IMG/VR virus record: IMGVR_UViG_3300023174_000045
Location: 124,001-188,000 of that record
Length of the DNA: 64,000 bases
Direction: 5' to 3' (one strand)
Part shown: positions 1,527-64,000 of the stretch, one piece after another
How positions within the stretch are numbered: the stretch's first letter is position 1
How the letters are laid out: each line of letters begins with the position of its first letter
Made by a program: the position numbers and the translations under genes
Notes under the pieces: model-generated
Told to the model about the DNA's origin: nothing
Database searches by the model: none
The model's input: only the letters and a program-made list of their open reading frames with translations

Positions 1527-4187
1527 ATGAGTTATATTGACGCACTATTTGATCGTGAACACGATCGCATTCATGTTGTAGAACGCCGCGACGGCAAACG
1601 GCAGTATCGAGAGTATCCTGCCAATTATGTGTTCTACTACGACGACCCCCGAGGCAAGTTCCAAAGTATCTACGGCACGCCAGTGTCAAGGTTCAGTACC
1701 CGCAACAACAAAGAATTCCGCAAGGAAGTCCGAGCACAAAGCGGGCGACAGATCTACGAATCGGACATAAATCCCATATTCCGTTGCTTTGAAGAAAACT
1801 ACCGAGACCAAGACGCCCCCACATTACACACAGCATTTTTTGACATTGAAGTTGCTTTTGATGCTGTGCGTGGATTCTCGCCTGTGGAGGATCCTTTCAA
1901 TCCCATCACTGCTATATCGGTATATCTGGATTGGCTGGAGCAACTTGTGACACTTGTTGTGGCACCACGCCACATGAGTGCAGAGACTGCTCGTGAGATC
2001 TGTGCGGAATTTGAGAACACTGTGCTGTGCGAATCTGAAACAGACATGGTGAAGATGTTCCTGGACCTAATCGAAGATGCAGACATCTTGAGTGGTTGGA
2101 ATTCAGAAGGCTATGACATACCCTACACAATAAACCGTGTGACACGAGTACTCAGCAAAGACGACACCCGACGTTTTTGTTTGTGGGGGCAGTTTCCCAA
2201 GAAACGTATGTTTGAACGTTTTGGTGCTGAACAAGAAACTTATGACTTGGTGGGTCGTGTGCATATGGACTATATGCAACTGTATCGCAAATACACTTAT
2301 GAAGAGCGTCATAGTTATAGCCTGGATGCCATTGCTGAATACGAACTGGGTGAACGCAAAACACAATACGAAGGCACACTAGATCAATTGTACAACAACG
2401 ACTTTCCAAAGTTTATTGAATACAACCGACAAGATACATTGTTGTTGGACAAACTGGACAAGAAATTACGTTTCTTGGAACTGGCCAGCGAACTGGCACA
2501 TGCCAACACTGTGCTGTTGGCCACCACAATGGGTGCTGTGGCAGTGACTGAGCAGGCCATTATCAACGAAGCACATGAACGTGGCATGGTTGTGCCCAAT
2601 CGCAAGCAACGACTCACTGACGAGGACACACAGGCAGCAGGTGCCTATGTGGCATATCCCAAAAAAGGATTACATGAATGGATTGGGTCTGTGGACATCA
2701 ATTCATTGTATCCCAGTGCAATTCGTGCGTTGAACATGGGGCCAGAAACCATTATAGGTCAACTGCGTCCCATAATGACAGACCGGTATATCAAAGACAA
2801 AATGGCCAAGGGTGACTCATTTGCGGCAGCATGGGAAGGTGTGTTTGCCAGTCTAGAATACACTGCTGTGATGGAACAACAGCGTGGCACAGAGATCACC
2901 ATTGACTGGCAGTCAGGTGAGGAGACTGTACACTCGGGTGCTGAGATTTGGTACATGTTGTTTGACTCAAACCAACCTTGGATACTCAGTGCCAATGGTA
3001 CCATATTCACCTACGAAAAGAAAGGCGTTATTCCTGGCTTGCTGGAACGCTGGTATGCCGAACGCAAAGAAATGCAGGCCAAGAAAAAGGAGGCCAAGGA
3101 TGCCAAAGAGATTGCTTTCTGGGACAAACGTCAACTGGTTAAAAAGATTAATCTCAACAGTTTGTATGGCGCTATTCTTAATCCTGGCTGCCGCTTTTTT
3201 GACAAGCGAATTGGCCAATCAACTACCTTGACCGGTCGAAGTATTGCCAAACACATGGATGCGCACTTGAATGAATGTATCACAGGTGAATATGATCATA
3301 TGGGTAAAGCAGTAATCTACGGTGACACAGACTCCTGCTACTTCTCAGCATGGCCTGTGCTGAAACAAGAAGTTGCCGAAGGCCGCATGGAATGGTCAAA
3401 GGAAATCTGTATTCAGTTATACGATTCAATTGCTGACCAGGTGAACGACTCGTTCCCGGCATTTATGGAACGTGCTTTTCACTGTCCCAGAGACATGGGC
3501 GAGTTGATCAAAGCCGGACGTGAAACTGTAGCAGATCGCGGACTGTTCATCACCAAGAAACGCTATGCTGTGAACGCCATTGACATTGAAAACAAACGAC
3601 TGGACATCAACGGTGCTATTGGCAAGACCAAGGCTACTGGCCTGGATCTAAAGCGCAGTGATACCCCCAAAGTTATTCAAGACTTCTTGTTGGAAATTCT
3701 AAATAAAGTGCTGGCTGGTGCTGAACGTGAAGAAATCATTGAACGTGTGCGTGAGTTCAAGTATGAATTCAAAGAGCGGCCGGGCTGGGAAAAAGGCTCG
3801 CCCAAGCGTGTGAACAACTTGACCAAGTACGGCAAGGAAGAAGAACGCCTGGGCAAAGCCAACATGCCCGGACATGTACGTGCGGCCCTGAACTGGAACA
3901 ACTTGCGCAGAATGAATTCAGACAATTACAGTATGCAGGTGGTTGATGGTATGAAGACCATTGTGTGCAAACTGCGAAGCAATGCCTTGGGCTGGACGTC
4001 AATTGGCTATCCCACAGACGAGATGCACTTGCCGCAATGGTTCAAGGACTTGCCTTTTGATGACACAGAAATGGAAGCCACTGTGGTGGATCAAAAGATT
4101 GACAACTTATTAGGTGTGTTGGACTGGGACCTGGCAGCAGCCACCAACACTGAAAACACATTTACTTCGTTATTTTCTTTCGAATGA
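1527..4187 (+). CDS. DNA polymerase family B (T4 gp43-like)
   Basis: ExoI FDIE, motif A DINSLYPS, motif B KKINLNSLYG, motif C YGDTDS. Confidence 0.97.
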   Translation: MSYIDALFDREHDRIHVVERRDGKRQYREYPANYVFYYDDPRGKFQSIYGTPVSRFSTRNNKEFRKEVRAQSGRQIYESDINPIFRCFEENYRDQDAPTLHTAFFDIEVAFDAVRGFSPVEDPFNPITAISVYLDWLEQLVTLVVAPRHMSAETAREICAEFENTVLCESETDMVKMFLDLIEDADILSGWNSEGYDIPYTINRVTRVLSKDDTRRFCLWGQFPKKRMFERFGAEQETYDLVGRVHMDYMQLYRKYTYEERHSYSLDAIAEYELGERKTQYEGTLDQLYNNDFPKFIEYNRQDTLLLDKLDKKLRFLELASELAHANTVLLATTMGAVAVTEQAIINEAHERGMVVPNRKQRLTDEDTQAAGAYVAYPKKGLHEWIGSVDINSLYPSAIRALNMGPETIIGQLRPIMTDRYIKDKMAKGDSFAAAWEGVFASLEYTAVMEQQRGTEITIDWQSGEETVHSGAEIWYMLFDSNQPWILSANGTIFTYEKKGVIPGLLERWYAERKEMQAKKKEAKDAKEIAFWDKRQLVKKINLNSLYGAILNPGCRFFDKRIGQSTTLTGRSIAKHMDAHLNECITGEYDHMGKAVIYGDTDSCYFSAWPVLKQEVAEGRMEWSKEICIQLYDSIADQVNDSFPAFMERAFHCPRDMGELIKAGRETVADRGLFITKKRYAVNAIDIENKRLDINGAIGKTKATGLDLKRSDTPKVIQDFLLEILNKVLAGAEREEIIERVREFKYEFKERPGWEKGSPKRVNNLTKYGKEEERLGKANMPGHVRAALNWNNLRRMNSDNYSMQVVDGMKTIVCKLRSNALGWTSIGYPTDEMHLPQWFKDLPFDDTEMEATVVDQKIDNLLGVLDWDLAAATNTENTFTSLFSFE

Positions 4188-5160: not shown

Positions 5161-5883
5161 ATGAGAGATTATCTTAAAGACTTGGTAGAACACACACATG
5201 ATCTTGGCTGCATTGACTTGATCAAAATCACTGGCGATGACAAAAGCACAGCCATTGTGGGCGTGGCAGAAGATTTGAGTGTGGTGTTAGAAGGTGAATT
5301 CAAAAATCCACATCCAGATTTTATAGGCACATTTGGCATGCCCAACTTGAACAAGTTGAAAATTTTGTTGAACTTGCAAGAGTACAAGGAAAATGCCAAA
5401 CTCAAACTGACCAAGAAGGCCACAGGTGCTCCTGATGGCATTGAGTTTGAAAATGCTGGAGGAGACTTCCGCAACACATATCGTTTCATGGCAGCAGAAA
5501 TTGTCAACGACAAACTCAAAACACCCAAGTTCAAAGGGGTGACATGGCACATTGAATTTGAGCCCACTGTGGCTGCCATCCAAAAATTGCGTATGCAAGC
5601 ACAGGCCAATGCCGAAGAGCCCAACTTCCAGGCCCGGACCGAAAATGGCGACTTGAAGTTCTTCTTTGGTGACCATTCAACACACGCTGGTAACTTTGTG
5701 TTCCACTCAGGTGTCAACGGTCAATTGAAACGTGCTTGGAGTTGGCCTGCTCAACAGTTCATGTCCATCATGGCCCTGACTGGGGACAAAACTATTCGCA
5801 TCAGTGATGACGGTGCTGCCAAGATCACTGTGGATTCAGGCGTGGCTGTTTACAACTACATCTTACCAGCACAAAGCAAATAA
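5161..5883 (+). CDS. Sliding clamp (gp45-like)
   Basis: 240 aa near polB, FG.PNL.KL pattern of T4-like clamps. Confidence 0.7.
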   Translation: MRDYLKDLVEHTHDLGCIDLIKITGDDKSTAIVGVAEDLSVVLEGEFKNPHPDFIGTFGMPNLNKLKILLNLQEYKENAKLKLTKKATGAPDGIEFENAGGDFRNTYRFMAAEIVNDKLKTPKFKGVTWHIEFEPTVAAIQKLRMQAQANAEEPNFQARTENGDLKFFFGDHSTHAGNFVFHSGVNGQLKRAWSWPAQQFMSIMALTGDKTIRISDDGAAKITVDSGVAVYNYILPAQSK

Positions 5884-6089
5884 TGGAAACCAAAGCTAGA
5901 ACTGTGACAAGAATGATCACGTATAGAATAACCGCATGGTTGTTTACTATATTTTGGACTTGGTTGTTTACTGGTGACATTGCTTCGGCCACAGGATTTG
6001 CCACAGCTCTACACATCATGCTCAGTGTAGATTATTACATACACGAGCGTATCTGGTTAAAAATCAAGTGGGGCCGAATTGCAGGATAA
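5883..6089 (+). CDS. DUF2061-like small membrane protein
   Basis: ET..RT...YR and YYIHERIW..IKWG pattern. Confidence 0.65.
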   Translation: METKARTVTRMITYRITAWLFTIFWTWLFTGDIASATGFATALHIMLSVDYYIHERIWLKIKWGRIAG

Positions 6090-9064: not shown

Positions 9065-10263
9065 GAAAGTTGTACTACATGGGCCTTGAAAGTTATGAGG
9101 CCCGTTACACACTGCAACTAACTGAATGGAATCGACGTGTGTTTGAACGTCGAGGCTTGGATGTGGTATACGTACCTGGTGTCACCATTGACAACACCCA
9201 AAGCATCAGTGTTGGACAGGTGTTGGATGCGCATGGTCGCAGTTACTTTTCAATGAGCCAAATGATGAACTTGGTTCAACTCATGAAGAATGGAGAAGTC
9301 ACCAATGAAGATGTGGTCTACTTTGAAGACATGTTTCAGCCAGGTATCGAAAGTCTCCCTTACATCATGGATCAAATTGATCCTAGCCAGCGTCCCCGTG
9401 TTTATGTTCGTTGTCTTGCTCAGGCCATTGACCCTGATGATTTTGTACATGTGTGGGGCATGGCGAACTGGATGGCAACGTATGAAAAAATGGTCAACCA
9501 CTTTGTAACTGGCGTGTTAGCCACCAATGAAGAAATGGTGGCTCACATGCGTATTGCAGGTTGGACTGCTCCAATCTACAACATCTCCGGCTTGGCATTT
9601 GGCAAAGAGGAAGTGCTGGAACGCATTGGTGGTGCCAGCAACATTCGACCATTTGCAGATCGACCAAGACGAGTGGGCTTTGCGGCACGTTGGGATCAAG
9701 AGAAGCAACCAGGCTTCTTCATGGACTTGATTGAGATGTATGGTGAACTTACCACAGAGCCTTGCGAGTTTGCAATCTATTCGGGTGGCCCATTGCGTAG
9801 CAACAATCCAGAATATGTTACTAGAGCCAGGGCCATGGAAGCAGCCGGCAAACTCAAGATATACGACAACATCTCAAAGAACGAATACTATGCACATCTC
9901 AACAACACTCGTGTGTTGTTTAATTGTGCGTTACAAGATTGGGTGTCTAACACAGTTTCAGAAGCAGATACTCTGGGCTGTAATGTGTTGTATCCTGCTT
10001 ATAGATCTTTCCCCGAAACTTTTTCAAATGATCCCAACAGGCTGTATGTGCCTTGGAGCATAGATGATGCTTATCACAAAATGCAAAACCTTTTACGAGA
10101 ACCACATCACAACATGGGTCTCATATCTAACTGGACTGATGGTACTGTTGATCGCATCGTTGATATACTGCTTGGTAATGGTGAGCAGTGGAATCGTGCA
10201 GGCAATAGATATCGTGATCACGTGGCTGAAGAAAAGTATCATGTTGTAAAGGTTGAAGAATGA
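9061..10263 (+). CDS. GT-B fold glycosyltransferase (GT4-like)
   Basis: FAARWDQEKQP, QDWVSNTVSEADTLGC motif; ATGA overlap start. Confidence 0.8.
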   Translation: MRKLYYMGLESYEARYTLQLTEWNRRVFERRGLDVVYVPGVTIDNTQSISVGQVLDAHGRSYFSMSQMMNLVQLMKNGEVTNEDVVYFEDMFQPGIESLPYIMDQIDPSQRPRVYVRCLAQAIDPDDFVHVWGMANWMATYEKMVNHFVTGVLATNEEMVAHMRIAGWTAPIYNISGLAFGKEEVLERIGGASNIRPFADRPRRVGFAARWDQEKQPGFFMDLIEMYGELTTEPCEFAIYSGGPLRSNNPEYVTRARAMEAAGKLKIYDNISKNEYYAHLNNTRVLFNCALQDWVSNTVSEADTLGCNVLYPAYRSFPETFSNDPNRLYVPWSIDDAYHKMQNLLREPHHNMGLISNWTDGTVDRIVDILLGNGEQWNRAGNRYRDHVAEEKYHVVKVEE

Positions 10264-10454
10264 TTAACGAACACTTCAAAAATCAAATAGAGCAAGGTGC
10301 TACTACTATGTTTTTCTATGGCTTAGAATCAGGGTCGGGCCCGTTTAAAATTAATATCACAAATCACAAAGATACATTGGACACATTTCCAACTAACTTA
10401 GAGTTTGTTAGAATGCTGAGTGAAAGTATGCCATTATTCAAGGAAATCGAATGA
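10260..10454 (+). CDS. Hypothetical protein
   Basis: Coupled to both neighbours. Confidence 0.6.
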   Translation: MINEHFKNQIEQGATTMFFYGLESGSGPFKINITNHKDTLDTFPTNLEFVRMLSESMPLFKEIE

Positions 10455-11410
10455 GCACAGTAGTTGTCACAGGCATCTCAGGATTCATAGGTGGCCAAAC
10501 TGCACTGCTGTTGAAAGACGCAGGCGAACGTGTGATTGGCATTGATCGCCACCCACTGCCAGCACACCTCAAAGGTGTGTGTGATCGATTTGTGCAGGAA
10601 GATTTTTCCAGCAAACACGCACTCAGTGTGATTGTGCAAGAACTCCCTGACGCCATTGTACACTGTGCCGGTGCCAGCCTGGTTGGTCCCAGCATGAAGG
10701 ATCCAGCCTTGTACTACCAAAACAATGTGGTAGACACATTTGAATTGTTGGAAATTGTTCGCCGGGCGTTACCAAAAACCAAGATTATCTTCAGTAGCAG
10801 TGCAGCCACATACGGTGAGCCTGTGATGTTGCCTGTACACGAAGTTGATCCTGCTGAACCTGTGTCACCATATGGTCAAAGCAAACTCATGGTGGACATG
10901 ATGTTGGAATCATATCATCGTGCCTATGATCTCAACTGTGTGAGTTTTCGTTATTTCAATGCCTGTGGTGCTGATCCAAAGAAGCGGCATGGTCAAGCAC
11001 CGGGTGCCACACACATCATTGCCAGAGTGTTGGAAGCCCTTAGAGATGACAGCGAGTTCACGTTAAATGGTGTAGACTTTCCCACCCCGGATGGTACTTG
11101 TGTGAGAGACTACGTGCATGTGGAAGACATAGCACGAGCACACAGCCTGGCTATCTATCATGACATTGCCTCAGGTGTGTATAATCTAGGCTCCAACAAC
11201 GGAACCAGCAATCGAGAAATCATTGCCGCAGCCGAGCGTGTGACTGGACGGAAATTGAAAGTGATTATGGGTACAGCCAGGCCGGGTGATCCTGCTGTGC
11301 TCACTGCCAGTGCTGCCAAGTTTGGCCGGGTTGGGGAAGGTTGGCGACAGTTTGAACTGGATGACATGATTCAACACGCCTGGAACTGGTATGTTCGAAA
11401 AGATACTTGA
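10451..11410 (+). CDS. galE: UDP-glucose 4-epimerase-like SDR
   Basis: TGISGFIG, SSSAATYG, YGQSK, RYFNACG, RDYVHV. Confidence 0.88.
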   Translation: MSTVVVTGISGFIGGQTALLLKDAGERVIGIDRHPLPAHLKGVCDRFVQEDFSSKHALSVIVQELPDAIVHCAGASLVGPSMKDPALYYQNNVVDTFELLEIVRRALPKTKIIFSSSAATYGEPVMLPVHEVDPAEPVSPYGQSKLMVDMMLESYHRAYDLNCVSFRYFNACGADPKKRHGQAPGATHIIARVLEALRDDSEFTLNGVDFPTPDGTCVRDYVHVEDIARAHSLAIYHDIASGVYNLGSNNGTSNREIIAAAERVTGRKLKVIMGTARPGDPAVLTASAAKFGRVGEGWRQFELDDMIQHAWNWYVRKDT

Positions 11411-30767: not shown

Positions 30768-32183
30768 ATGGATATAAACAAAATGAAGCAATGGAAAATT
30801 GAAAATTTGGACTCCAAGAGTGCAACTTTTTGTGGATCCAAATGGTACAACGCCAGTGTATGGTTGAGCCAAGGCTGGACCACCAGCTGCCATCACAATC
30901 CGCCACATGCCATTGATGTAGATGCTATTGCCGCAAATCCCATGGCCATGCACAACACTCCCATAAAAAAACAAGAACGTGCCATGATGCAACAAGGGCT
31001 GAGACCCAAGAACTGCCAATTTTGCTGGGTAATGGAAGACACTGATCCAGACGCTCTCAGTGATCGAGTGTGGACCAGCTGGGGAGGTCAAATGACTCCC
31101 GAACAATTGGATTCAGCATTTAATCAAAGTGCCGATGACGATTTTGATTTGACTTATTTGGAGTTTGTTCCTGACCGTACATGTAATCTAGGTTGCAGTT
31201 ATTGTGCTCCAACCATTAGCACAACTTGGGCCCGAGACATCACACAGAATGGACCATACGAAAACTTGCCAACTGATCACCGCAACCATTACAAAACCAA
31301 TGGCAATGAGTTTGTTGATTACAAATACGGCGATGCAAATCCCTATGCTGATGCATTTTTCAAATGGTGGGATTCAAGTTTGCACAAGACCATCAAGCAG
31401 ATACGCATCAGCGGCGGCGAACCCATGATGTCAGGCCACACCTGGAAACTCATGGACTGGCTGTCTGAACACGCAGGCGAGGCTGACTGCCGAGTTGAAA
31501 TGACCACAAACTTGGCCTACGATCAAGACACACTCATGCGTTTCTTGGATGCTTGCAGTCGTGTGAGTGTGCCAATTTGGTTGTTTACCAGCGGTGAATG
31601 CACCGAGAAAAAAATTGAATATGTGAGAGATGGCCTGGACTGGGAATTGTGGAACAACAATATAGATCATGTATTGAATTCTGGAGTGATTGCCATGACT
31701 GGTATATGTGGTACACTGAGTGCGGCCAGTGCTGATGGGTTTACAGATTTTTTGTATTGGTTGGCCGACCGCAAACGCAATGCACCACACAATCCCAATA
31801 ACACAAATAGTCTCATGTTGTCTGTAAACCCGGTACGTTTTCCCACTTTTCAAAATGTTGTAATTTTACCGTCCGCATTACGCTTGGAGTACAGCCAAGA
31901 GATTGATAAATTTTTAGAGCAACGAGATATTGTTAGTTTGTTTGACCCTATTGAATTAGATCATATCAAACGATATTCTACATATCTACGTGAAGTCAAA
32001 GTACCACACGAAGAAACACAGATAACCCACACGCAAACTGAATATGCAGGTACTCTGCAAAATATTGACGTGGCAGCATTGGGTCGTGATTTCAAGAGTT
32101 TTTTCTCACAATACGATCAACGAAGAAATCAAAATTTTGTCAAAACATTTCCACGTCTCTCTGAATGGTATGCAGGCTTATGA
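30768..32183 (+). CDS. Radical SAM protein
   Basis: CNLGCSYC, SGGEP, TTN; extra N-terminal Cys cluster. Confidence 0.88.
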   Translation: MDINKMKQWKIENLDSKSATFCGSKWYNASVWLSQGWTTSCHHNPPHAIDVDAIAANPMAMHNTPIKKQERAMMQQGLRPKNCQFCWVMEDTDPDALSDRVWTSWGGQMTPEQLDSAFNQSADDDFDLTYLEFVPDRTCNLGCSYCAPTISTTWARDITQNGPYENLPTDHRNHYKTNGNEFVDYKYGDANPYADAFFKWWDSSLHKTIKQIRISGGEPMMSGHTWKLMDWLSEHAGEADCRVEMTTNLAYDQDTLMRFLDACSRVSVPIWLFTSGECTEKKIEYVRDGLDWELWNNNIDHVLNSGVIAMTGICGTLSAASADGFTDFLYWLADRKRNAPHNPNNTNSLMLSVNPVRFPTFQNVVILPSALRLEYSQEIDKFLEQRDIVSLFDPIELDHIKRYSTYLREVKVPHEETQITHTQTEYAGTLQNIDVAALGRDFKSFFSQYDQRRNQNFVKTFPRLSEWYAGL

Positions 32184-56464: not shown

Positions 56465-57556
56465 ATGTCAGCAGTATCAGATGCACGTACAGTAACCAGT
56501 GCCCAAGTTCGCAAATCAATCATGCATGCGTTTAAGAAAAAGCGCCCTATGTTTTTGTGGGGTCCTCCCGGCATCGGCAAGAGCGAAGTTGTGGCTGGCA
56601 TCACCGAAGAACTTGGTGGCTTGATGATTGACTTGCGCCTGGGTCAAATGGAGCCCACAGACATTCGTGGTATTCCGTTTTACAACAAAGACATCGGCAA
56701 GATGGATTGGGCTCCTCCTGTGGAGATGCCCGATGAAGAAACTGCCAGCCAGTACCCTGTGGTGGTGTTGTTCTTGGACGAGATGAACTCGGCTCCAGCG
56801 TCAGTGCAAAGTGCCGCATATCAGTTGATTTTGAATCGACGCATTGGCAAGTATCGACTGCCTGACAATGTGGTAATGGTTGCTGCCGGTAACCGTGAGA
56901 GTGACAAAGGTGTCACATTCCGCATGCCTACTCCACTGGCAAATCGTTTTGTTCACCAAGAAATGCGTGTGGACTTTGCATCTTGGCAAGAGTGGGCTGT
57001 TAAAAACAACATCCACAAGGACGTGGTGGGTTACTTGAGTTTTGCCAAGCAAGACTTGTATGATTTTGATGCCAAGTCCAGTTCACGTGCGTTTGCTACA
57101 CCACGCTCATGGAGTTTTGTGAGTGAGTTGTTGGCAGATGAATGTGATGAGGACACAGAAATGAACCTGATTGCAGGTACTGTGGGCGAGGGTCTTGCAG
57201 TTAAGTTCAAGGCTCACCGCAAAGTGTCTGGACGCATGCCACAGCCCTCGGACATCTTGAGTGGCAAGGTCACTGACTTGAATGTAAAAGAGGTGAGTGC
57301 CATGTACAGTTTGGTGATCTCCATGTGCTACGAACTCAAAGACGCCATCGAGCAAAAGAAAGTTGGCGACAAAGAGTTCCATGAAATGTCCAACAACTTT
57401 TTGACATACATGATGAAGAACTTTGAAACTGAGCTGGTGGTGTTGGGTGCTCGTATTGCACTGACAACTTACTTGTTGCCAATGCAACCCACCAAGATCA
57501 AGTGCTTTGACGAGTTCCACAGCCGCTACGGCAAGTACATTTTGCAAGCCAACTGA
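56465..57556 (+). CDS. MoxR-like AAA+ ATPase
   Basis: GPPGIGKS, LFLDEMN, AAGNR, LANRF, TPRSW. Confidence 0.9.
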   Translation: MSAVSDARTVTSAQVRKSIMHAFKKKRPMFLWGPPGIGKSEVVAGITEELGGLMIDLRLGQMEPTDIRGIPFYNKDIGKMDWAPPVEMPDEETASQYPVVVLFLDEMNSAPASVQSAAYQLILNRRIGKYRLPDNVVMVAAGNRESDKGVTFRMPTPLANRFVHQEMRVDFASWQEWAVKNNIHKDVVGYLSFAKQDLYDFDAKSSSRAFATPRSWSFVSELLADECDEDTEMNLIAGTVGEGLAVKFKAHRKVSGRMPQPSDILSGKVTDLNVKEVSAMYSLVISMCYELKDAIEQKKVGDKEFHEMSNNFLTYMMKNFETELVVLGARIALTTYLLPMQPTKIKCFDEFHSRYGKYILQAN

Positions 57557-58478: not shown

Positions 58479-58501
58479 ACATGAAACAAACAAGGAATCG
58501 C

Positions 58502-59806
58502 ATGCACTATTTTAACCCTGACGTACTACATGCCACAGCAGGCACCACTGCCACAAAAGATGACGCAAAGAAATTTGCCAACTTGATCGGTCCCATGGAC
58601 ATGAAACTGGATCGAGTTGTGCGTGAAAAATTGATTTCAGCCCGTGTGGGTTTGTTGCTGAAAGCAAGTTTTTTTGGCAACCTTGCAACACGTTTGAAAC
58701 TGGTCAATGCTGATGAGTGGTGTCCCACTGCCGCAACAGACGGACGCAATTTTTACTACAACACTCGCTTCATTGAGATGTTGCGCCCCAAAGAAATTGA
58801 GTTTTTGTTTGGACATGAAGTGTTGCATTGTGTATATGATCACTTTGGACGCCGCGGTGATCGTGACCCACAGTTGTGGAACATTGCCAATGATTATTGT
58901 GTGAATGGTGACTTGGTAAAGCACAATGTGGGTGAGAAGATCACTAGTGTGCCGTGTTTGTATGACCGCAAGTATGACGGCATGAGCTCGGAAGAAGTGT
59001 ACGATGCCTTGTACGAAAATGCTGAAAAGATTGACATTGGCAAATTGCTGGATCAAATGATTGACGAGCACTTGGACGGTGATGGCGAAGGTGACGGCGA
59101 CGAGGACGGTGAAGGCAAGGGTCGTCCCAAGTTGAGCGCTGAAGAAAAACAGGCCATCAAGGACGAGATCAAAGAAGCCATGTTGGCGGCTGCCGCTACT
59201 GTGGACGGTGCTGGTAACTTGCCCGCAGGTGTCAAGCGACTGATCCAACAGCTGACAGAACCCCAGATGAACTGGCGTGAGATCTTGCGCATGAACTTGG
59301 AGAGCACCATCAAAGCCGACTACACCTGGATGCGGGCCAGCCGCAAAGGTTGGCACATGGATGCAGTCATGCCCGGCCAAAAGCCCGATGAAATGATTGA
59401 CATTGCAGTGATGTTGGATGCATCTGGTTCAATCTCGGAATCCATGCTCAAGGACTTCTTGAGTGAAATCCAAGGCATCATGGACTCGTTCCCTGCATAC
59501 AAGATTCATGTTGTGACATTTGATACCGAAGCATACAATCCTGCACAATATGACTCGGACAATCTTGACAGCATGATTGACTATGAAGTGTCCGGTGGTG
59601 GTGGTACTGATTTTGATTGTATCTTCACCTACTTGAAGGAAGAGGAAATCACACCACGCCGACTCATCGTGTTCACAGACGGCTACCCGTTTGGTTCATG
59701 GGGTGACGCCGAATACTGCGACACCACCTGGATATTGCATGGTACCACAACCATTGTTCCACCCTGGGGCACACATGCCTACTACGACGAGAACAAGGAA
59801 GATTGA
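58502..59806 (+). CDS. Metallopeptidase-like plus VWA domain protein (DUF2201-like)
   Basis: HEVLH, MIDAS DASGS, GGGGTDF, VFTDG. Confidence 0.88.
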   Translation: MHYFNPDVLHATAGTTATKDDAKKFANLIGPMDMKLDRVVREKLISARVGLLLKASFFGNLATRLKLVNADEWCPTAATDGRNFYYNTRFIEMLRPKEIEFLFGHEVLHCVYDHFGRRGDRDPQLWNIANDYCVNGDLVKHNVGEKITSVPCLYDRKYDGMSSEEVYDALYENAEKIDIGKLLDQMIDEHLDGDGEGDGDEDGEGKGRPKLSAEEKQAIKDEIKEAMLAAAATVDGAGNLPAGVKRLIQQLTEPQMNWREILRMNLESTIKADYTWMRASRKGWHMDAVMPGQKPDEMIDIAVMLDASGSISESMLKDFLSEIQGIMDSFPAYKIHVVTFDTEAYNPAQYDSDNLDSMIDYEVSGGGGTDFDCIFTYLKEEEITPRRLIVFTDGYPFGSWGDAEYCDTTWILHGTTTIVPPWGTHAYYDENKED

Positions 59807-59817
59807 GGAGTGCCGGA

Positions 59818-60096
59818 ATGAACGAACGAATTCAAGAACTTGCCCAACAATCACAACTTGCAGAGTTGTATGACCGCTATGTTGAACAATGTATGAAAAA
59901 TGCCGACGACGATATTCTTGATTACGATGTGATTGTTAAAGAGTTTGCCGAGTTGTTTGTGCAGGAATGTGCCCAAGTTTGTGAGCCGACACTGGATGAA
60001 CCTTACGAGGATATGACTGAATTTGGCAAAGGGTTAGTTGAAGGGCAAGATATTGCCATTGAACGAATCAAAAAACATTTCGGAGTCGAAGAATGA
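59818..60096 (+). CDS. MNERI-family paralogue 1
   Basis: MNERIQELA...FAEL...HFGVEE. Confidence 0.8.
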   Translation: MNERIQELAQQSQLAELYDRYVEQCMKNADDDILDYDVIVKEFAELFVQECAQVCEPTLDEPYEDMTEFGKGLVEGQDIAIERIKKHFGVEE

Positions 60097-60224
60097 AAAC
60101 CGTGTTTGCTATTGTAGGTGCGTTCACTGTGGCTCTAGGCATCCTTGGAGCATTTGGTGTTGGCCACTTTGTTATGATCTACAGTCCAGATAAAATTTCC
60201 TGCGTCAAAGGAGTTGAAGCGTGA
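60093..60224 (+). CDS. 43-aa hydrophobic protein
   Basis: Starts in junction repeat, ends GVEA. Confidence 0.55.
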   Translation: MKTVFAIVGAFTVALGILGAFGVGHFVMIYSPDKISCVKGVEA

Positions 60225-60385
60225 GCAACCTTTGGTTTAACATTAGATTTGGTACTAGGCATTTTCAGTTCTCACGTGACTGGGAGATTTCGTTCAGGGT
60301 CAACTCCTACTGGATTGAGAATCCGCCTGCCAAGTGGTTTGAAGTATACTGCCTGTTTGGGCATCATTTCGGAGTTGAAGAATGA
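60221..60385 (+). CDS. 54-aa protein ending HFGVEE (GTG start)
   Basis: Ends in junction repeat. Confidence 0.55.
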   Translation: MSNLWFNIRFGTRHFQFSRDWEISFRVNSYWIENPPAKWFEVYCLFGHHFGVEE

Positions 60386-60576
60386 ACACAGCAGTATTTT
60401 CAGCCGCAGTTTGGGTATTGGTTACATCATTTGTTGATTCACACGGTGGTGGTAGCGTAACTTATAGTCCACCTTTGAAAGACCTACCGTCGTGTGAATA
60501 CTTACAAAAGAGTTTGCCTGATTCAGTATCATACCGTACTCGGTGTGTTCAAATTAACATGGCGGTGACAAAATGA
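60382..60576 (+). CDS. Small secreted/membrane protein
   Basis: ATGA overlap. Confidence 0.6.
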   Translation: MNTAVFSAAVWVLVTSFVDSHGGGSVTYSPPLKDLPSCEYLQKSLPDSVSYRTRCVQINMAVTK

Positions 60577-60812
60577 ACGAACGAATCCGAGAACTTGCTG
60601 AACAGGCTGGGATATTAAAAGAGCAATCTGTACAAGCAAAGATAGTAAAGAATGAAGATGGAACATGGACTTCAATTTTAGAATATCCTGATTTAGAAAA
60701 GTTCGCCGAGTTATTGATCCGGCAATGTATCCAGGCCGTAAAAAATGTCGGTGGCTACAACGAAGACTATCATATGAATGCTATCAAAAAATATTTCGGA
60801 GTTGAAGAATGA
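60573..60812 (+). CDS. MNERI-family paralogue 2
   Basis: Shared motifs. Confidence 0.8.
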   Translation: MNERIRELAEQAGILKEQSVQAKIVKNEDGTWTSILEYPDLEKFAELLIRQCIQAVKNVGGYNEDYHMNAIKKYFGVEE

Positions 60813-61063
60813 ACGAACGAATTCGACAACTTGCTGAACAGGCTAAAATAGATTATGAATTGCTGCCTGAGATTGCACGGGAACCTGTGTGGATCGCTCT
60901 TGATGACGAACTTGAAAAGTTCGCCGAATTATTGATCCGGCAATGCATGCGTATGTGCGATTGTGCAGATGTATCATTGCTAGAACATAATCGTCCTCAA
61001 GAAGCCAGTGGTGCAGCCGGCGCTAAACAATTTATCAAAGAATGGTTTGAGGTCGAAGAATGA
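60809..61063 (+). CDS. MNERI-family paralogue 3
   Basis: Shared motifs. Confidence 0.8.
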   Translation: MNERIRQLAEQAKIDYELLPEIAREPVWIALDDELEKFAELLIRQCMRMCDCADVSLLEHNRPQEASGAAGAKQFIKEWFEVEE

Positions 61064-61245
61064 ACGATTGGATTCAAGAACTTGAAGCTACACTCATGGA
61101 TCTATACCAGGGTCGACGGGTGGTTGTGCCACATGATATCGACCATGCTCATAACATGCTGATGGTGGCGGGTGCCTATATTCAACATGACAAACAGCGC
61201 ATGTGGAGCACACTAACGGAGATGAAAAGTGAACGAACGAATTAA
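61060..61245 (+). CDS. Hypothetical protein
   Basis: ATGA overlap. Confidence 0.65.
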   Translation: MNDWIQELEATLMDLYQGRRVVVPHDIDHAHNMLMVAGAYIQHDKQRMWSTLTEMKSERTN

Positions 61246-61486
61246 GGAACTTGCTGAACAGGCTACATCAATTGTAGAAATGGTAGGGCCCGAAGGTTAT
61301 ACCAGCAGTTATGCCAAATTTGATAGGGAAAAGTTCGCCGAGTTATTGATTCAGCAATGTATCAACGTTTGTGAGCCAGTTTTAGACGAACCGTATGAGG
61401 ATATGAGTGAGTTTGACAAAGGGTTAGTCGAAGGACAGGATGTTGCAGTAGAAAAGATCAAACAACATTTCGGAGTTGAAGAATGA
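61229..61486 (+). CDS. MNERI-family paralogue 4 (GTG start)
   Basis: Shared motifs. Confidence 0.8.
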   Translation: MNERIKELAEQATSIVEMVGPEGYTSSYAKFDREKFAELLIQQCINVCEPVLDEPYEDMSEFDKGLVEGQDVAVEKIKQHFGVEE

Positions 61487-61531
61487 AGCCAAACACACAG
61501 GCGTGGCGAGCATGGATGTTGGAGATCTACT

Positions 61532-61756
61532 ATGAATGAACGAATTAAAGAACTTGCTCAACAGGCTGAAATCTATGCTGGCGATCTGATAGATCAGGGT
61601 GCTGATTACGATCAGTATCCACGCTATTACACAGAAAAGTTAACCGAGTTAATGGTCCGGGAATGTTATGTGGCATTGTTTCCTGCCCTGCGTGACATGA
61701 TCAGCCGTGGACAAGCATACGACATGATTCGACAACACTTTGGAGTTGAAGAATGA
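61532..61756 (+). CDS. MNERI-family paralogue 5
   Basis: Shared motifs. Confidence 0.8.
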   Translation: MNERIKELAQQAEIYAGDLIDQGADYDQYPRYYTEKLTELMVRECYVALFPALRDMISRGQAYDMIRQHFGVEE

Positions 61757-62127
61757 CCGACGAAATCACTTTGGAGATGCTGGACCGCAAGACGGCATGG
61801 TGCGAGCAAAACGCATTTTGGGGGCAAGATTCGGCCATACAGCGTATGCAAGATTTTTACTTTGAAAAGACTCGAACCAGTGTGAACGAAGCCTGGCCTG
61901 AAAGTTTTACCCTGGACGATCTTGCCAAAGTATTGAATGTGGAACGTGTGAGTTATAGAGTCTATTACAGCCGGGATAATCTTACATTGAGACTGTTTGT
62001 GTTCCGTGCCCACTGCACCAAGTACGAAGAGCGCGAGATGTTGGCGTTGGGATTTGTACATGCCAAAGACGGCGATACAGACAACATCCCTGACCAACCA
62101 GTAGAAGAAGTTAAAGGAGAAGAATAA
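61753..62127 (+). CDS. Hypothetical protein
   Basis: Starts in junction repeat. Confidence 0.7.
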   Translation: MTDEITLEMLDRKTAWCEQNAFWGQDSAIQRMQDFYFEKTRTSVNEAWPESFTLDDLAKVLNVERVSYRVYYSRDNLTLRLFVFRAHCTKYEEREMLALGFVHAKDGDTDNIPDQPVEEVKGEE

Positions 62128-62423: not shown

Positions 62424-62669
62424 ATGGGCAATCAAACTGAATACTTTGAACGTATTGCATACCAGCCTGAATATCACATAGGCGACAGGGTGTTTGGTCA
62501 TTATCGCGGTATTCCCTTTGCAGGCTCTGTGGGCAATGACACACTAATCAATCCTGTGCAAGGTCCCAGGATCAGCATACACTTGGATTTGCCTATACGC
62601 TTGGAAGGTGTTGTAAAGAATGTTATAATTGTTCAGCACAAAGATGTTCGACGCATGAAGGAGTTTTAA
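62424..62669 (+). CDS. Hypothetical protein
   Basis: IGDRVFG, VHLDLP-like SH3/KOW pattern. Confidence 0.7.
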   Translation: MGNQTEYFERIAYQPEYHIGDRVFGHYRGIPFAGSVGNDTLINPVQGPRISIHLDLPIRLEGVVKNVIIVQHKDVRRMKEF

Positions 62670-62897
62670 ATGGTGTATAAAAGTGTTTACACAGAAGTTG
62701 AAGTAGAGGTTGATCTCGAAGAGTTTGACACAGATGATTTGCTGGAAGAATTAGACTCACGAGGTGCATTGCCCCCAGAAGGCAATGTCAATGCCAAAGA
62801 ACTGGTAGAGCAGATTTACTACCTACGCAGGCAAGGACAAGCATACGACCACTTGATGGATTCGTTGATGTATGCTGTGCTGGGACGCATAGCGTGA
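62670..62897 (+). CDS. Hypothetical protein
   Basis: SD AAGGAG. Confidence 0.75.
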   Translation: MVYKSVYTEVEVEVDLEEFDTDDLLEELDSRGALPPEGNVNAKELVEQIYYLRRQGQAYDHLMDSLMYAVLGRIA

Positions 62898-63224: not shown

Positions 63225-63261
63225 AAATTTACCCCCTGGTGGTTTGGTATTAAATATTTGC

Positions 63262-63471
63262 ATGGAAAATATTCAACTTACCCTGGCTGATCTCGCATCA
63301 CTCAAAAATTTAATCGAAGCTGCCACTGAACGTGGCGCTTACAAGGCTGCTGAATTGAGCGTTGTAGGTGGCATCTATGACAAGCTCACTGCTTTCTTGG
63401 TTGCATCACAAGCACAATTAGCACAACAAGCTGAAGCACAACAACCAGCTGAACCCACACAAGGAGCATGA
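63262..63471 (+). CDS. Hypothetical protein
   Basis: TAAATA upstream; RGAYKAAEL. Confidence 0.7.
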   Translation: MENIQLTLADLASLKNLIEAATERGAYKAAELSVVGGIYDKLTAFLVASQAQLAQQAEAQQPAEPTQGA

Positions 63472-63473
63472 CA

Positions 63474-64000
63474 ATGTTGAAACACATAGGACGACACGGT
63501 GACCGCAAGGTTGCAATCATATTTAGAGAACTACCTGGCGAGGACCACATGTGCCTGGTGATTTATCCTGAGACATTGCCAACACATATTCATAACACCA
63601 TTATGGGTATTTTGGAAAGTGCTCCTGGACAAGCCGCACCCAATTTGGCCGATGTGTTGCACCGCAACCTGTTGCCCGATGGCAGAGTTATTTTACAGGC
63701 CTTGCACAATGAAGGCATGTTGAAGAAAATTCAAACCAACCAAGTCATTATCACTCCCACAGCACAAAGCAACGTCAAACTGGACGAACTCAATCGCATT
63801 GTAAAAGAAATGGAATCAGGCGCCGATGCTCTTAAACGCATGCAGGAACTGGATGCCAATGCTGGTTTTGTGGACCCTGCTGTAAAACGCAAGGCTGAGA
63901 AGGCATTCAAAGCAGGCAAACTTGCTGAAGCCGAAGCCATGGTCACACCATTGGTTGCGCCTGCCTCGGGTGCGTTAGATGATCAGTCACTGGCAGCCAA
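63474..64000 (+). CDS. Hypothetical protein, 3'-truncated
   Basis: SD AAGGAG; MLKHIGRHGDRKVAIIFRE... open to window end. Confidence 0.75.
   Translation, partial: MLKHIGRHGDRKVAIIFRELPGEDHMCLVIYPETLPTHIHNTIMGILESAPGQAAPNLADVLHRNLLPDGRVILQALHNEGMLKKIQTNQVIITPTAQSNVKLDELNRIVKEMESGADALKRMQELDANAGFVDPAVKRKAEKAFKAGKLAEAEAMVTPLVAPASGALDDQSLAA

Follow-up and report, generated by a model that had tools for sequence, protein, structure and literature searches.

Several systems are known in which short conserved sequences guide the exchange of phage or bacterial genes. In T4-type phages, PeSL mobile regulatory cassettes lie at gene boundaries in hyperplastic regions full of small ORFans; each consists of a sigma-70 promoter plus a stem-loop terminator and ends in a Shine-Dalgarno (SD) sequence and a start codon, and recombination between PeSLs causes insertion, deletion and replacement of genes between close relatives, with incoming genes expressed (Arbiol et al. 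2010, PMC2839356; Comeau et al. 2014, PMC4122927). In the T-even tail-fibre adhesins gp38/gp37, conserved motifs (GRMs, His boxes) separate hypervariable segments; the motifs are thought to form the structural core that presents these segments, and recombination between motifs swaps the variable parts (Trojet et al. 2011, PMC3157838; Tetart et al. 1998, cited there). The Susskind-Botstein "linker" model of lambdoid phage mosaics proposes that short conserved sequences at module boundaries guide homologous exchange between otherwise unrelated DNA, although in lambdoid phages such linkers are rare and weakly supported. Relaxed recombination by phage recombinases has also been described (De Paepe et al. 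2014, PMC3945230). Integrons carry arrays of unrelated small ORFs joined by a repeated boundary element, with expression supplied by the array, and in silent-cassette antigenic variation (for example pilE/pilS and vlsE) conserved flanks allow gene conversion of variable cassettes into a constant frame. Here, we describe an array of small-protein genes in a freshwater jumbo phage, in which three short DNA-identical constant blocks frame two hypervariable blocks that are swapped freely among phages, and in which the last constant block doubles, as inferred from its geometry, as the ribosome-binding site and start of the next gene.

The array lies in a 64,000-nt stretch (the window; positions 124,001 to 188,000 of IMG/VR record IMGVR_UViG_3300023174_000045). 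An earlier note, made from the sequence alone, had reported a 21-nt repeat that serves at once as C-terminus, SD, stop and next start, with five MNERI paralogues and unrelated ORFs joined by it. The observation was confirmed. A search with the pattern CATTTCGGAGTTGAAGAATGA, allowing up to 3 mismatches, gave five hits, all on the + strand, while 0 were expected in 100 shuffles. The copy at the tail of member 3 (TGGTTTGAGGTCGAAGAATGA) differs at 7 of 21 positions; it is homologous, but to call it a close variant, as the note did, is generous. One further copy is partial. Each full copy encodes HFGVEE followed by a stop (YFGVEE in one case) and holds GGAG 7 nt before an ATG that overlaps the TGA stop, a geometry present at six junctions in the window. 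ORFs start at all of these ATGs. The five paralogues have the claimed constant-variable-constant-variable-constant layout (C1-V1-C2-V2-C3), which was seen as repeat families D1/D2 (head), D4 (middle) and D5-D7 (tail). Paralogues 1 and 4 share V2 (159 nt at 78% identity) but not V1, and unrelated ORFs use the same junction, both as the note had stated. In addition, we found an 18-aa mini-ORF bridging paralogues 4 and 5, and a sixth, more distant paralogue outside the window, ending at genome position 62815.

Table 1. Features of the cassette array and its flanks (window coordinates).
Position	Strand	Feature	Details
58481..59806	+	Upstream anchor gene, 441 aa	HExxH-type motif (HEVLH) visible in the translation, otherwise uncharacterised; conserved in 80 related contigs; relatives at 62-96% aa identity were used to compare the downstream region
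59818..60096	+	Family member 1, 92 aa	V2 block shared with member 4
60076..60096	+	Junction copy 1 (CATTTCGGAGTCGAAGAATGA)	Pattern hit; tail HFGVEE-stop, SD GGAG, ATGA overlap with the ORF at 60093
60093..60224	+	Unrelated 43-aa hydrophobic ORF	Starts at a junction ATG; ends in a partial junction (GGAGTTGAAGCGTGA at 60210-60224, GTGA overlap)
60221..60385	+	Unrelated 54-aa ORF	Ends in the exact 21-mer; homologue in Limnohabitans phage DC31 ends ...FGKHL-stop without this tail
60365	+	Junction copy	Pattern hit
60382..60576	+	Unrelated 64-aa ORF	Starts at a junction ATG; ATGA overlap with member 2
60437-60499		Inverted repeat	The only one found; not at a junction
60573..60812	+	Family member 2, 79 aa	AF2 model pLDDT 88.8
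60689..60731	+	Middle constant block C2 (EKFAELLIRQC), reference copy	Other copies at 59931-59973, 60907-60949, 61321-61363 and 61627-61669; crossover site of the chimeras
60792..60822	+	Composite junction plus head (tail of member 2, start of member 3)	Pattern hit at 60792 (YFGVEE-stop); 31-nt constant stretch; the matching 25-mer occurs 50 times in 74 other contigs
60809..61063	+	Family member 3, 84 aa	Tail is the diverged form WFEVEE-stop (61043-61063)
61060..61245	+	61-aa ORF	Decayed family head (MNDWIQEL) and unrelated body; relative in L089 begins VNERIQEL; 3' end reads through a decayed junction before member 4
61229..61486	+	Family member 4, 85 aa	GTG start; commonest V1 and V2 types of the sampled family; AF2 model pLDDT 86.5
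61466	+	Junction copy	Pattern hit
61483..61539	+	18-aa mini-ORF	Starts at a junction ATG; stop overlaps the start of member 5
61532..61756	+	Family member 5, 74 aa	Pattern hit at 61736-61756, 2 mismatches
61753..62127	+	Unrelated 124-aa ORF	Starts at the last junction ATG; homologue in relative L097 itself ends ...GVEE-stop with the junction core
63244..63998	+	Downstream anchor genes (75 aa, and 177+ aa running off the window)	Conserved in nearly all relatives

To determine how widespread these genes are, profile searches of protein collections were carried out. They returned 1,434 hits and, in a further search, 6,945 cluster representatives at 50% identity with E<=1e-3, all metagenomic (mostly freshwater) and all unannotated, and more than 431 stretches were confirmed in IMG/VR. 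The window array is therefore one instance of a very large, unnamed family of proteins of about 70-95 residues, which could not be seen from the sequence alone. All five window ORFs match the family profile over their full length, with C1, C2 and C3 in order. Pfam and PHROGs scans of all ten small ORFs gave nothing significant. Among 50,697 GenBank phage records, no family match was obtained by tblastn with paralogue 4 or with another protein, P0039, nor by blastn with the 61-nt junction plus head; the only phage hit concerned the unrelated 54-aa ORF, in Limnohabitans phage DC31. A search of a genome collection returned only small contigs of freshwater MAGs from several phyla, which are probably mis-binned phage DNA and gave no host assignment. 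Candidate hosts of carrier phages are freshwater Burkholderiales such as Limnohabitans, which is a guess from the DC31 link. A literature search for the peptide motifs found no occurrence of HFGVEE, FGVEE or MNERIKELAEQA, and a keyword search for phage tandem arrays of mosaic small proteins found nothing. Arrays are typical of the family: 318 members were found in 81 loci, of which 68 held at least 2 members, with up to 13 in 12 kb.

The constant blocks are conserved at the level of DNA. C1 is the head (ATGAACGAACGAAT..., MNERIxELAEQA), C2 the middle block (GAAAAGTTCGCCGAGTT...TGT, EKFAELIVREC), and C3 the tail (ATCAAA.AACATTTCGGAGTTGAAGAATGA, IKxHFGVEE-stop). The window copies carry ATGAACGAACGAAT, GAAAAGTTCGCCGAGTT and TTCGGAGTTGAAGAATGA, as do members in 74 other, independent viral contigs. 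In 200 unique members outside this genome, the CAT, GGA and GTT codons of HFGVEE were each used in 100% of cases (background 57%, 21% and 36%), CGA of MNERI in 96% (background 13%), and GCC, GAG and TTG of KFAELIV in 82%, 87% and 88% (background 22-27%). Glu is GAG in C2 but GAA in C1 and C3, so codon bias is not the cause. In 19,482 pairs sharing neither V block, identical codons were used at identical residues in 0.71, 0.71 and 0.81 of cases in C1, C2 and C3, respectively, against 0.42-0.45 expected. Out of 241 complete tails, 199 stop at TGA and 189 have the ATGA overlap, with GGAG and the 7-nt spacer kept; the exact 21-mer occurs in 90, and 18 more carry one synonymous change. The last residue varies (E, K, L, Q, R) while the ATGA overlap is kept. 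The 15-nt core of the junction, GGAGTTGAAGAATGA (SD, 7 nt, ATG overlapping TGA), was found 181 times in 1.41 Mb with at most 1 mismatch, against about 0.06 expected by our own arithmetic. Of these occurrences, 44 do not end a recognised family member: the core ends unrelated ORFs in many phages and sometimes lies non-coding.

In contrast to the constant blocks, V1 and V2 are unrelated in sequence and length between members, and they reassort. A set of 471 proteins, which was seeded from paralogue 4 and hence over-represents its V1 and V2 types, gave 303 V1 and 284 V2 clusters. One V1 type had 39 V2 partners, one V2 type had 56 V1 partners, and ten four-combination squares were found. Two metagenomic genes are clean DNA chimeras of window paralogues. 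The gene in the sequence labelled L089 is 100% paralogue 4 in its 5' half and 100% paralogue 2 in its 3' half, and that in L090 is paralogue 2 in its 5' half and paralogue 1 in its 3' half; both switch inside C2. Between different contigs, sharing at >=93% nucleotide identity involved V1 only in 17 cases, V2 only in 11, and a whole gene in 1. No recombination event was observed directly, and since all comparison data are short-read metagenome assemblies, single chimeric contigs cannot be excluded. In read layouts represented by Logan contigs, joints at the constant blocks all had sides of 31 nt or less; they probably come from other family members and were not counted as rearrangements within this phage population. 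Depth on the constant blocks was 5-15 times the phage's own depth in the source lake, and was high in unrelated water metagenomes. The one RNA library holds family words, but this does not show transcription.

Array content was compared among relatives anchored on the upstream gene, which carry 0-5 members. The closest eight carry 0, 1, 1, 1, 1, 1, 2 and 1 members at this site, against 5 here. The condition that the earlier note had named as refuting its inference, an invariant array with no mosaicism, does not hold. Paralogues of one locus were no more alike in C1, C2 or C3 than members from different contigs (0.71-0.78 in both; p = 0.6-0.97), so this test for intragenomic concerted evolution was negative. 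No tyrosine integrase (PF00589), reverse transcriptase (PF00078) or RecA was found in the 225-kb record, which is 65% complete, and no recombinase was identified, single-strand-annealing recombinases lying outside the search. A promoter and terminator scan revealed 10 promoter-like sites against 9.5 expected and 4 terminator-like sites against 5.4 expected, none at the junctions. No Rfam match was obtained, and no inverted repeat was found at the junctions.

AF2 models of members 2 and 4 both show helix, hairpin, helix, helix: C1, C2 and C3 are predicted to form three helices, and V1 a beta-hairpin. This fits a fixed scaffold that displays variable surfaces. Fold searches gave no useful match: Foldseek against the PDB returned no match with E below 0.2, VIA-align wide gave a best Z of 4.2, BFVD returned only uncharacterised proteins of uncultured phages, probably family members, and the ESM Atlas returned only unnamed viral clusters.

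We conclude, with high confidence, that the family undergoes cassette exchange through DNA-conserved constant blocks. The analysis itself establishes the conservation of these blocks, synonymous sites included, across phages that otherwise share little, the lack of relatedness and the reassortment of V1 and V2, the differences in array content among close relatives, and the presence of the tail on unrelated ORFs. The mechanism is inferred: homologous recombination between the short identical blocks would move half-gene cassettes (crossover in C2) and whole genes (crossover in C3/C1), within a genome and above all between co-infecting phages, which would thus draw on a community-wide pool. Translational coupling by C3 and expression of the cassettes are likewise inferred, from geometry alone; in this view, which we consider likely, whatever gene follows is coupled to the one before, and this would explain why the last 15 nt persist even when the upstream body has been replaced by an unrelated ORF. 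A binding role in an arms race with the host is our best guess as to function, but a tentative one.

The interpretation in the earlier note is thus supported in part. Recombination-driven mosaicism without an identified integrase is supported, within the limits of the incomplete record. An accordion, in the sense of local amplification, is not supported, and arrays look assembled from a community-wide pool. That any inserted cassette is automatically expressed is a reasonable inference from the SD/ATGA geometry, whereas an anti-defence or host-interaction role is pure inference, since no fold or family match gives a function.

Of the alternatives, the one that survives best, though we consider it unlikely, is that nucleotide conservation is functional at the RNA level only, with C3 as SD and start for the next gene and C1 as an optimised initiation region, and recombination as an unselected by-product. 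The conserved SD/ATGA geometry, kept while the last residue varies, and the fact that C3 is the most conserved block are in its favour, and the synonymous conservation of C1 and C3 could be partly or wholly such a constraint. However, C2 lies in mid-gene, far from any start, and is as codon-fixed as C1, the spacer codon GTT is 100% fixed although SD spacers are not normally sequence-specific, and neither an Rfam match nor an inverted repeat was found. For C3, this alternative is compatible with our main explanation. Somewhat less likely is a local gene accordion, in which the array grows and shrinks by unequal crossing-over between junction/head repeats within one genome and the paralogues then diverge in place. 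Composite 25-31-nt junction plus head repeats do flank adjacent members, and copy number at this site ranges from 0 to 5 among relatives. Against it are the same-locus comparison, the unrelated variable blocks of neighbours, and the fact that the nearest DNA relatives of the window's blocks sit in other contigs in other combinations.

It is very unlikely that this is an ordinary tandem paralogue family whose 21-nt repeat is only the DNA shadow of a C-terminal peptide under protein-level selection. HFGVEE, MNERI and KFAEL are conserved at the protein level and lie, in the AF2 models, in helices that could form the core, but codon choice is nearly fixed where protein selection would allow 2-6 codons, including in pairs that share no variable block, and this refutes the idea; the tail also occurs on unrelated ORFs and non-coding, and is absent from the DC31 homologue of the 54-aa ORF. 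An assembly artefact, with short-read assemblers joining different members through shared blocks, is also very unlikely. Constant stretches reach 31 nt, the word size of Logan contigs, which break there, and several recombinant examples lie on short contigs. Yet the blocks are much shorter than reads, and the same combinations recur as distinct sequences: proteins P0117 and P0120 both join V1 of paralogue 4 to V2 of paralogue 2, and P0021, P0025 and P0028, from three assemblies, join V1 of paralogue 2 to V2 type 0. The window's own order is confirmed by two error-free contigs, X1 (59668-60663) and, from another study, X2 (61223-61731), and arrays also sit on contigs of 100-370 kb. A dedicated diversification machine (a diversity-generating retroelement or integron) is suggested only by a superficial resemblance, namely arrays of cassettes with repeated boundaries and hypervariable segments, and is highly improbable, given that the 65%-complete record has no reverse transcriptase or tyrosine integrase, that the variable blocks differ in length and are unrelated rather than adenine-specific variants of a template, and that the junctions have no attC-like inverted repeat.

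How phage hyperplastic regions gain, lose and remix their many small ORFans is a long-standing question, and the linker idea has had few clear examples beyond the PeSLs and the T-even tail-fibre motifs. Here, a single family with thousands of sequence clusters, abundant in lakes and absent from curated protein-family libraries and from cultured phages, gives hundreds of natural replicates in which 15-35-nt DNA-identical blocks delimit exchangeable half-genes and whole genes, and one block also carries the inferred translational signals for the next gene. This makes it directly testable what minimal homology phage recombination uses in nature, whether synonymous sites are selected for recombination, and what these hypervariable small proteins bind. 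These loci break k-mer assemblies, so such arrays are probably under-reported. A more far-reaching reading, possible but tentative, is that the constant blocks are kept identical because they work as recombination linkers. Freshwater phages of many lineages would then share one combinatorial library of small scaffold proteins, each assembled from interchangeable V1 and V2 modules and plugged into operons by a self-contained translational coupler, as a community-level, homology-driven counterpart of antigenic-variation cassette systems used in an arms race with host defences or receptors.

Compared with the PeSLs, the array shares short repeats at gene boundaries and a repeat with putative expression signals, and its region is hyperplastic at the level of content (0-5 members and different fillers among relatives). 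PeSLs are intergenic, whereas the repeat described here is coding, 15-31 nt long, shows no promoter or terminator above chance and no stem-loop, and would act at the level of translation; exchange also happens inside the genes, at C2. The constant-variable-constant design is shared with the gp38/gp37 adhesins, but there is no homology: the proteins of this family are small, have no virion-protein match and are present in several copies per genome, the number of variable-block types is far larger, and the last constant block is also, by its geometry, the RBS and start of the next gene. In comparison with the linkers of lambdoid phages, the same 15-31-nt sequences recur hundreds of times across contigs, including within genes. 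Integron arrays differ in their IntI integrase, attC hairpin and Pc promoter, none of which was found here in the 65%-complete record or at the junctions; the boundary here is coding (15-21 nt), and exchange is inferred to be by homology. In a gene accordion, as in poxvirus K3L, neighbouring copies are each other's closest relatives, which is not the case in this array. Finally, in contrast to silent-cassette antigenic variation, there is no single expression site with silent donors; all copies look expressible, and the inferred donors are other phages.

The window, bases 124,001-188,000 of a 225-kb IMG/VR viral record with a CheckV completeness of 65%, comes from lake or freshwater metagenomes. 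It encodes a T4-type family-B DNA polymerase (phrog_262, E = 9e-201) and a radical-SAM-like protein, while most other large ORFs tested had no PHROG match. All genes of the array are located on the + strand and overlap or nearly abut, in the order member 1, a 43-aa ORF, a 54-aa ORF, a 64-aa ORF, member 2, member 3, a 61-aa ORF, member 4, an 18-aa mini-ORF, member 5, and a 124-aa ORF. Two of the small filler ORFs look like membrane or secreted peptides, with a hydrophobic N-terminal stretch, and have no family match. Upstream of the array, an ATPase (phrog_1297) is followed by a 441-aa protein that matches phrog_1314, a family labelled "HNH endonuclease". The sequence of the 441-aa protein contains an HExxH-type motif (HEVLH), and it looks like a metallopeptidase plus VWA-type protein paired with a MoxR-like ATPase, so the PHROG label may be misleading. 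The pair is conserved in at least 80 related contigs.

Positions of features in the window, in the parent record and in related contigs
Sequence	Feature	Position	Strand
Window	T4-type family-B DNA polymerase	1527-4187	
Window	Radical-SAM-like protein	30768-32183	
Window	ATPase (phrog_1297)	56465-57556	
Window	441-aa protein (phrog_1314)	58481-59806	
Window	Array, member 1 to 124-aa ORF	59,818-62,127	+
Window	Small filler ORF, membrane or secreted-like	60093-60224	+
Window	Partial copy of the 21-mer	60210-60224	
Window	Small filler ORF, membrane or secreted-like	60382-60576	+
Window	Diverged copy of the 21-mer	61043	
Window	61-aa ORF with decayed head	61060	+
Window	124-aa ORF	61753-62127	+
Parent record, outside the window	Sixth, more distant family member	about 62576-62815	
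L090 (short ENA contig)	Adaptor-like sequence	1-30 and 3' end	
L095 (close relative)	Protein of about 265 aa, lipoprotein-like N-terminus	9674-10468	
L097 (close relative)	Homologue of the 124-aa ORF	5625-6032	

The 21-mer CATTTCGGAGTTGAAGAATGA was found five times with at most three mismatches, against 0 expected. A diverged copy (seven mismatches, encoding WFEVEE before the stop) and a partial copy are also present. Each full copy encodes a C-terminal HFGVEE, holds GGAG 7 nt before an ATG, and that ATG overlaps the TGA stop. An independent repeat search recovered three families of constant blocks, head (C1), middle (C2), and tail (C3), as well as a 159-nt second variable block (V2) shared by members 1 and 4 at 78% identity. 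We therefore conclude that the observation made in the earlier note, an array of paralogues and unrelated ORFs joined by a 21-nt repeat, is confirmed, with the small reservation that the diverged copy had been counted among the copies or close variants.

To determine how widespread these proteins are, a word-based search was conducted with member 4 and gave 1,434 hits, while an exhaustive profile search gave 6,945 representatives of 50%-identity clusters at E<=1e-3. None carries a name other than "hypothetical", and neither Pfam nor PHROGs has a model; the array is thus one instance of a very large unnamed family. No protein or DNA match was found in 50,697 GenBank phage records, and in 185,579 species genomes the family was found only on small contigs of freshwater MAGs. 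A 183-kb contig filed as a Haliscomenobacter MAG (NZ_JBBAKG010000001.1) carries two family members about 6 kb apart, and may be a mis-binned large phage genome. In 80 IMG/VR loci plus this genome, 318 members were found; 68 of the 81 loci have two or more, and one has 13 within 12 kb. None of the 74 non-redundant loci carries the upstream gene of the window, and they fall into at least 14 groups by shared large ORFs, so the family sits in different genomic contexts. In the parent record itself, a sixth, more distant member (MNEKFKQLALEA...KKHFGVEQ) lies alone, about 121 kb upstream of the array.

To find out whether the constant blocks are conserved as DNA and not only as protein, 200 unique full-length members from other contigs were compared with the codon usage of long ORFs in the same contigs. 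The constant blocks are conserved as DNA, not only as protein. Glu is encoded by GAG in C2 but by GAA in C1 and C3, which rules out simple codon bias.

Codon choice in the constant blocks of 200 unique members from other contigs, against long ORFs of the same contigs
Block	Residue	Codon	Share	Background
HFGVEE (C3)	His	CAT	100%	57%
HFGVEE (C3)	Gly	GGA	100%	21%
HFGVEE (C3)	Val	GTT	100%	36%
MNERI (C1)	Arg	CGA	96%	13%
KFAELIV (C2)	Ala	GCC	82%	22%
KFAELIV (C2)	Glu	GAG	87%	27%
KFAELIV (C2)	Leu	TTG	88%	27%

In 19,482 pairs of members from different contigs that share neither variable block, identical residues use identical codons in 0.71 (C1), 0.71 (C2), and 0.81 (C3) of cases, while the expectation is 0.42-0.45. 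These values are as high as those within variable blocks that are recognisably of the same type (0.68-0.75). Read layouts agree: in the source lake, depth over the constant blocks is 5-15 times this phage's own depth, and it stands out in the same way in freshwater, drinking-water, and "marine" metagenomes and in a freshwater RNA library, with many different sequences adjoining each block.

A different pattern was observed for the variable blocks, which reassort. The 471 unique proteins analysed give 303 clusters of the first variable block (V1) and 284 V2 clusters. The V1 type of member 4 is joined to 39 different V2 types, and the V2 type of members 1 and 4 is joined to 56 V1 types, although these two types are inflated because the sample was seeded with member 4. 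Ten four-combination squares exist. At the DNA level, a gene in the short contig L089 is 100% identical to member 4 through V1 and then 100% identical to member 2 through V2 to the stop, while a gene in L090 is member 2 in its 5' half and member 1 in its 3' half. In both cases, the switch lies inside C2. The L090 contig begins with CCATCTCATCCCTGCGTGTCTCCGACTCAG and ends with most of its reverse complement, which looks like a sequencing adaptor (Ion Torrent A) left in the assembly. Among members of different non-redundant contigs, stretches of at least 93% nt identity cover V1 only in 17 pairs, V2 only in 11, and the whole gene in one. The unit of the inferred exchange is therefore usually the half-gene bounded by constant blocks.

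The tail is portable and tied to the start of the next gene. Of 241 complete tails, 199 stop at TGA and 189 have the ATGA overlap, and the last residue varies (E, K, L, Q, R, and others) while the overlap is kept. The core GGAGTTGAAGAATGA, with no more than one mismatch, occurs 181 times in 1.41 Mb, against a calculated chance expectation of about 0.06. Of these occurrences, 137 end family members, 45 of which are followed by another member and 92 by other ORFs. The other 44 end ORFs not recognised as members, or lie just after an in-frame stop; a few of the 44 are divergent members, but many are plainly unrelated proteins ending in GVEE. In the window, the 54-aa ORF ends in the exact 21-mer, while its homologue in Limnohabitans phage DC31 ends in FGKHL without it. 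In the close relative L097, the homologue of the 124-aa ORF ends in KVEGVEE with the core GGAGTTGAAGAATGA, whereas the window copy ends in VKGEE followed by TAATG; the tail has been gained or lost on this unrelated gene between relatives. The head is much more family-specific, with 185 of 193 occurrences starting members. Even so, the 61-aa ORF has a decayed head, and its relative in L089 starts with VNERIQEL. In our reading, which is an inference, the last 15 nt are kept because they would serve as the ribosome-binding site and start context of whatever follows, so replacements of the upstream body that retain them would be the ones that survive.

To examine variation at the same site, we compared 80 contigs that carry the upstream 441-aa gene at 62-96% identity. 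Between this gene and the conserved downstream genes they hold 0 to 5 family members. The eight closest relatives (93-96% identity) hold 0, 1, 1, 1, 1, 1, 2, and 1 members, against five in the window. The fillers also differ: one relative, L092, has only an 80-nt spacer, while others hold membrane proteins and a conserved protein of about 265 aa with a lipoprotein-like N-terminus (MKRILTLSILAAAVLA.GC), which is found in the same hyperplastic interval in the close relatives L091, L095, and L097 and is lacking in the window. Short contigs L087, L089, and L090 show further arrangements joined to homologues of the window's 61753, 62189, and 62424 ORFs. An array invariant among populations and without mosaicism, which the earlier note had named as the outcome that would speak against it, was therefore not what was observed.

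The interpretation offered in that note, a recombination-driven accordion producing mosaic small proteins, is only partly supported, since mosaicism was found but local amplification was not supported. Pairs of members from the same locus are no more alike in C1, C2, or C3 than pairs from different contigs (0.71-0.78 in both; one-sided p = 0.6-0.97), and neighbouring members have unrelated variable blocks. We therefore see no sign of in-place duplication and divergence, or of genome-specific homogenisation, and the arrays look assembled by exchange with a pool shared among phages. The DNA-level conservation of the constant blocks, the reassortment of variable blocks, and the differences among relatives come directly from sequence comparison, all of it based on short-read assemblies, whereas exchange events themselves, translational coupling through the tail, and any function of the proteins are inferred. 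No integrase, reverse transcriptase, or RecA was found in the record, which is incomplete, and the region contains no promoter or terminator signal above chance, no Rfam match, and no inverted repeats at the junctions; it is therefore not a PeSL, an integron, or a DGR.

AF2 models of member 4 (pLDDT 86.5) and member 2 (pLDDT 88.8) both predict a helix (C1), a beta-hairpin (V1), a helix (C2 and the start of V2), and a helix (the end of V2 and C3), although the V1 and V2 sequences of the two proteins are unrelated. No solved or predicted structure with a known function matched in the structure searches. A fixed scaffold that displays variable surfaces, in several copies per genome, only in phages, and in regions of small accessory genes, suggests a binding role in phage-host or phage-phage conflict, but this is no more than a tentative guess.

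Two known systems are closest to the one analysed here. The first is the PeSL cassettes of T4-type phages, boundary repeats that carry expression signals and mediate modular shuffling (PMC2839356). The second is the design of the T-even gp38/gp37 adhesins, in which conserved motifs are combined with hypervariable segments (PMC3157838). The present case combines both of these ideas in a new form: the repeats are coding, they are inferred to act at the level of translation, they appear to work both between and within genes, and they belong to an unnamed family of thousands of clusters.
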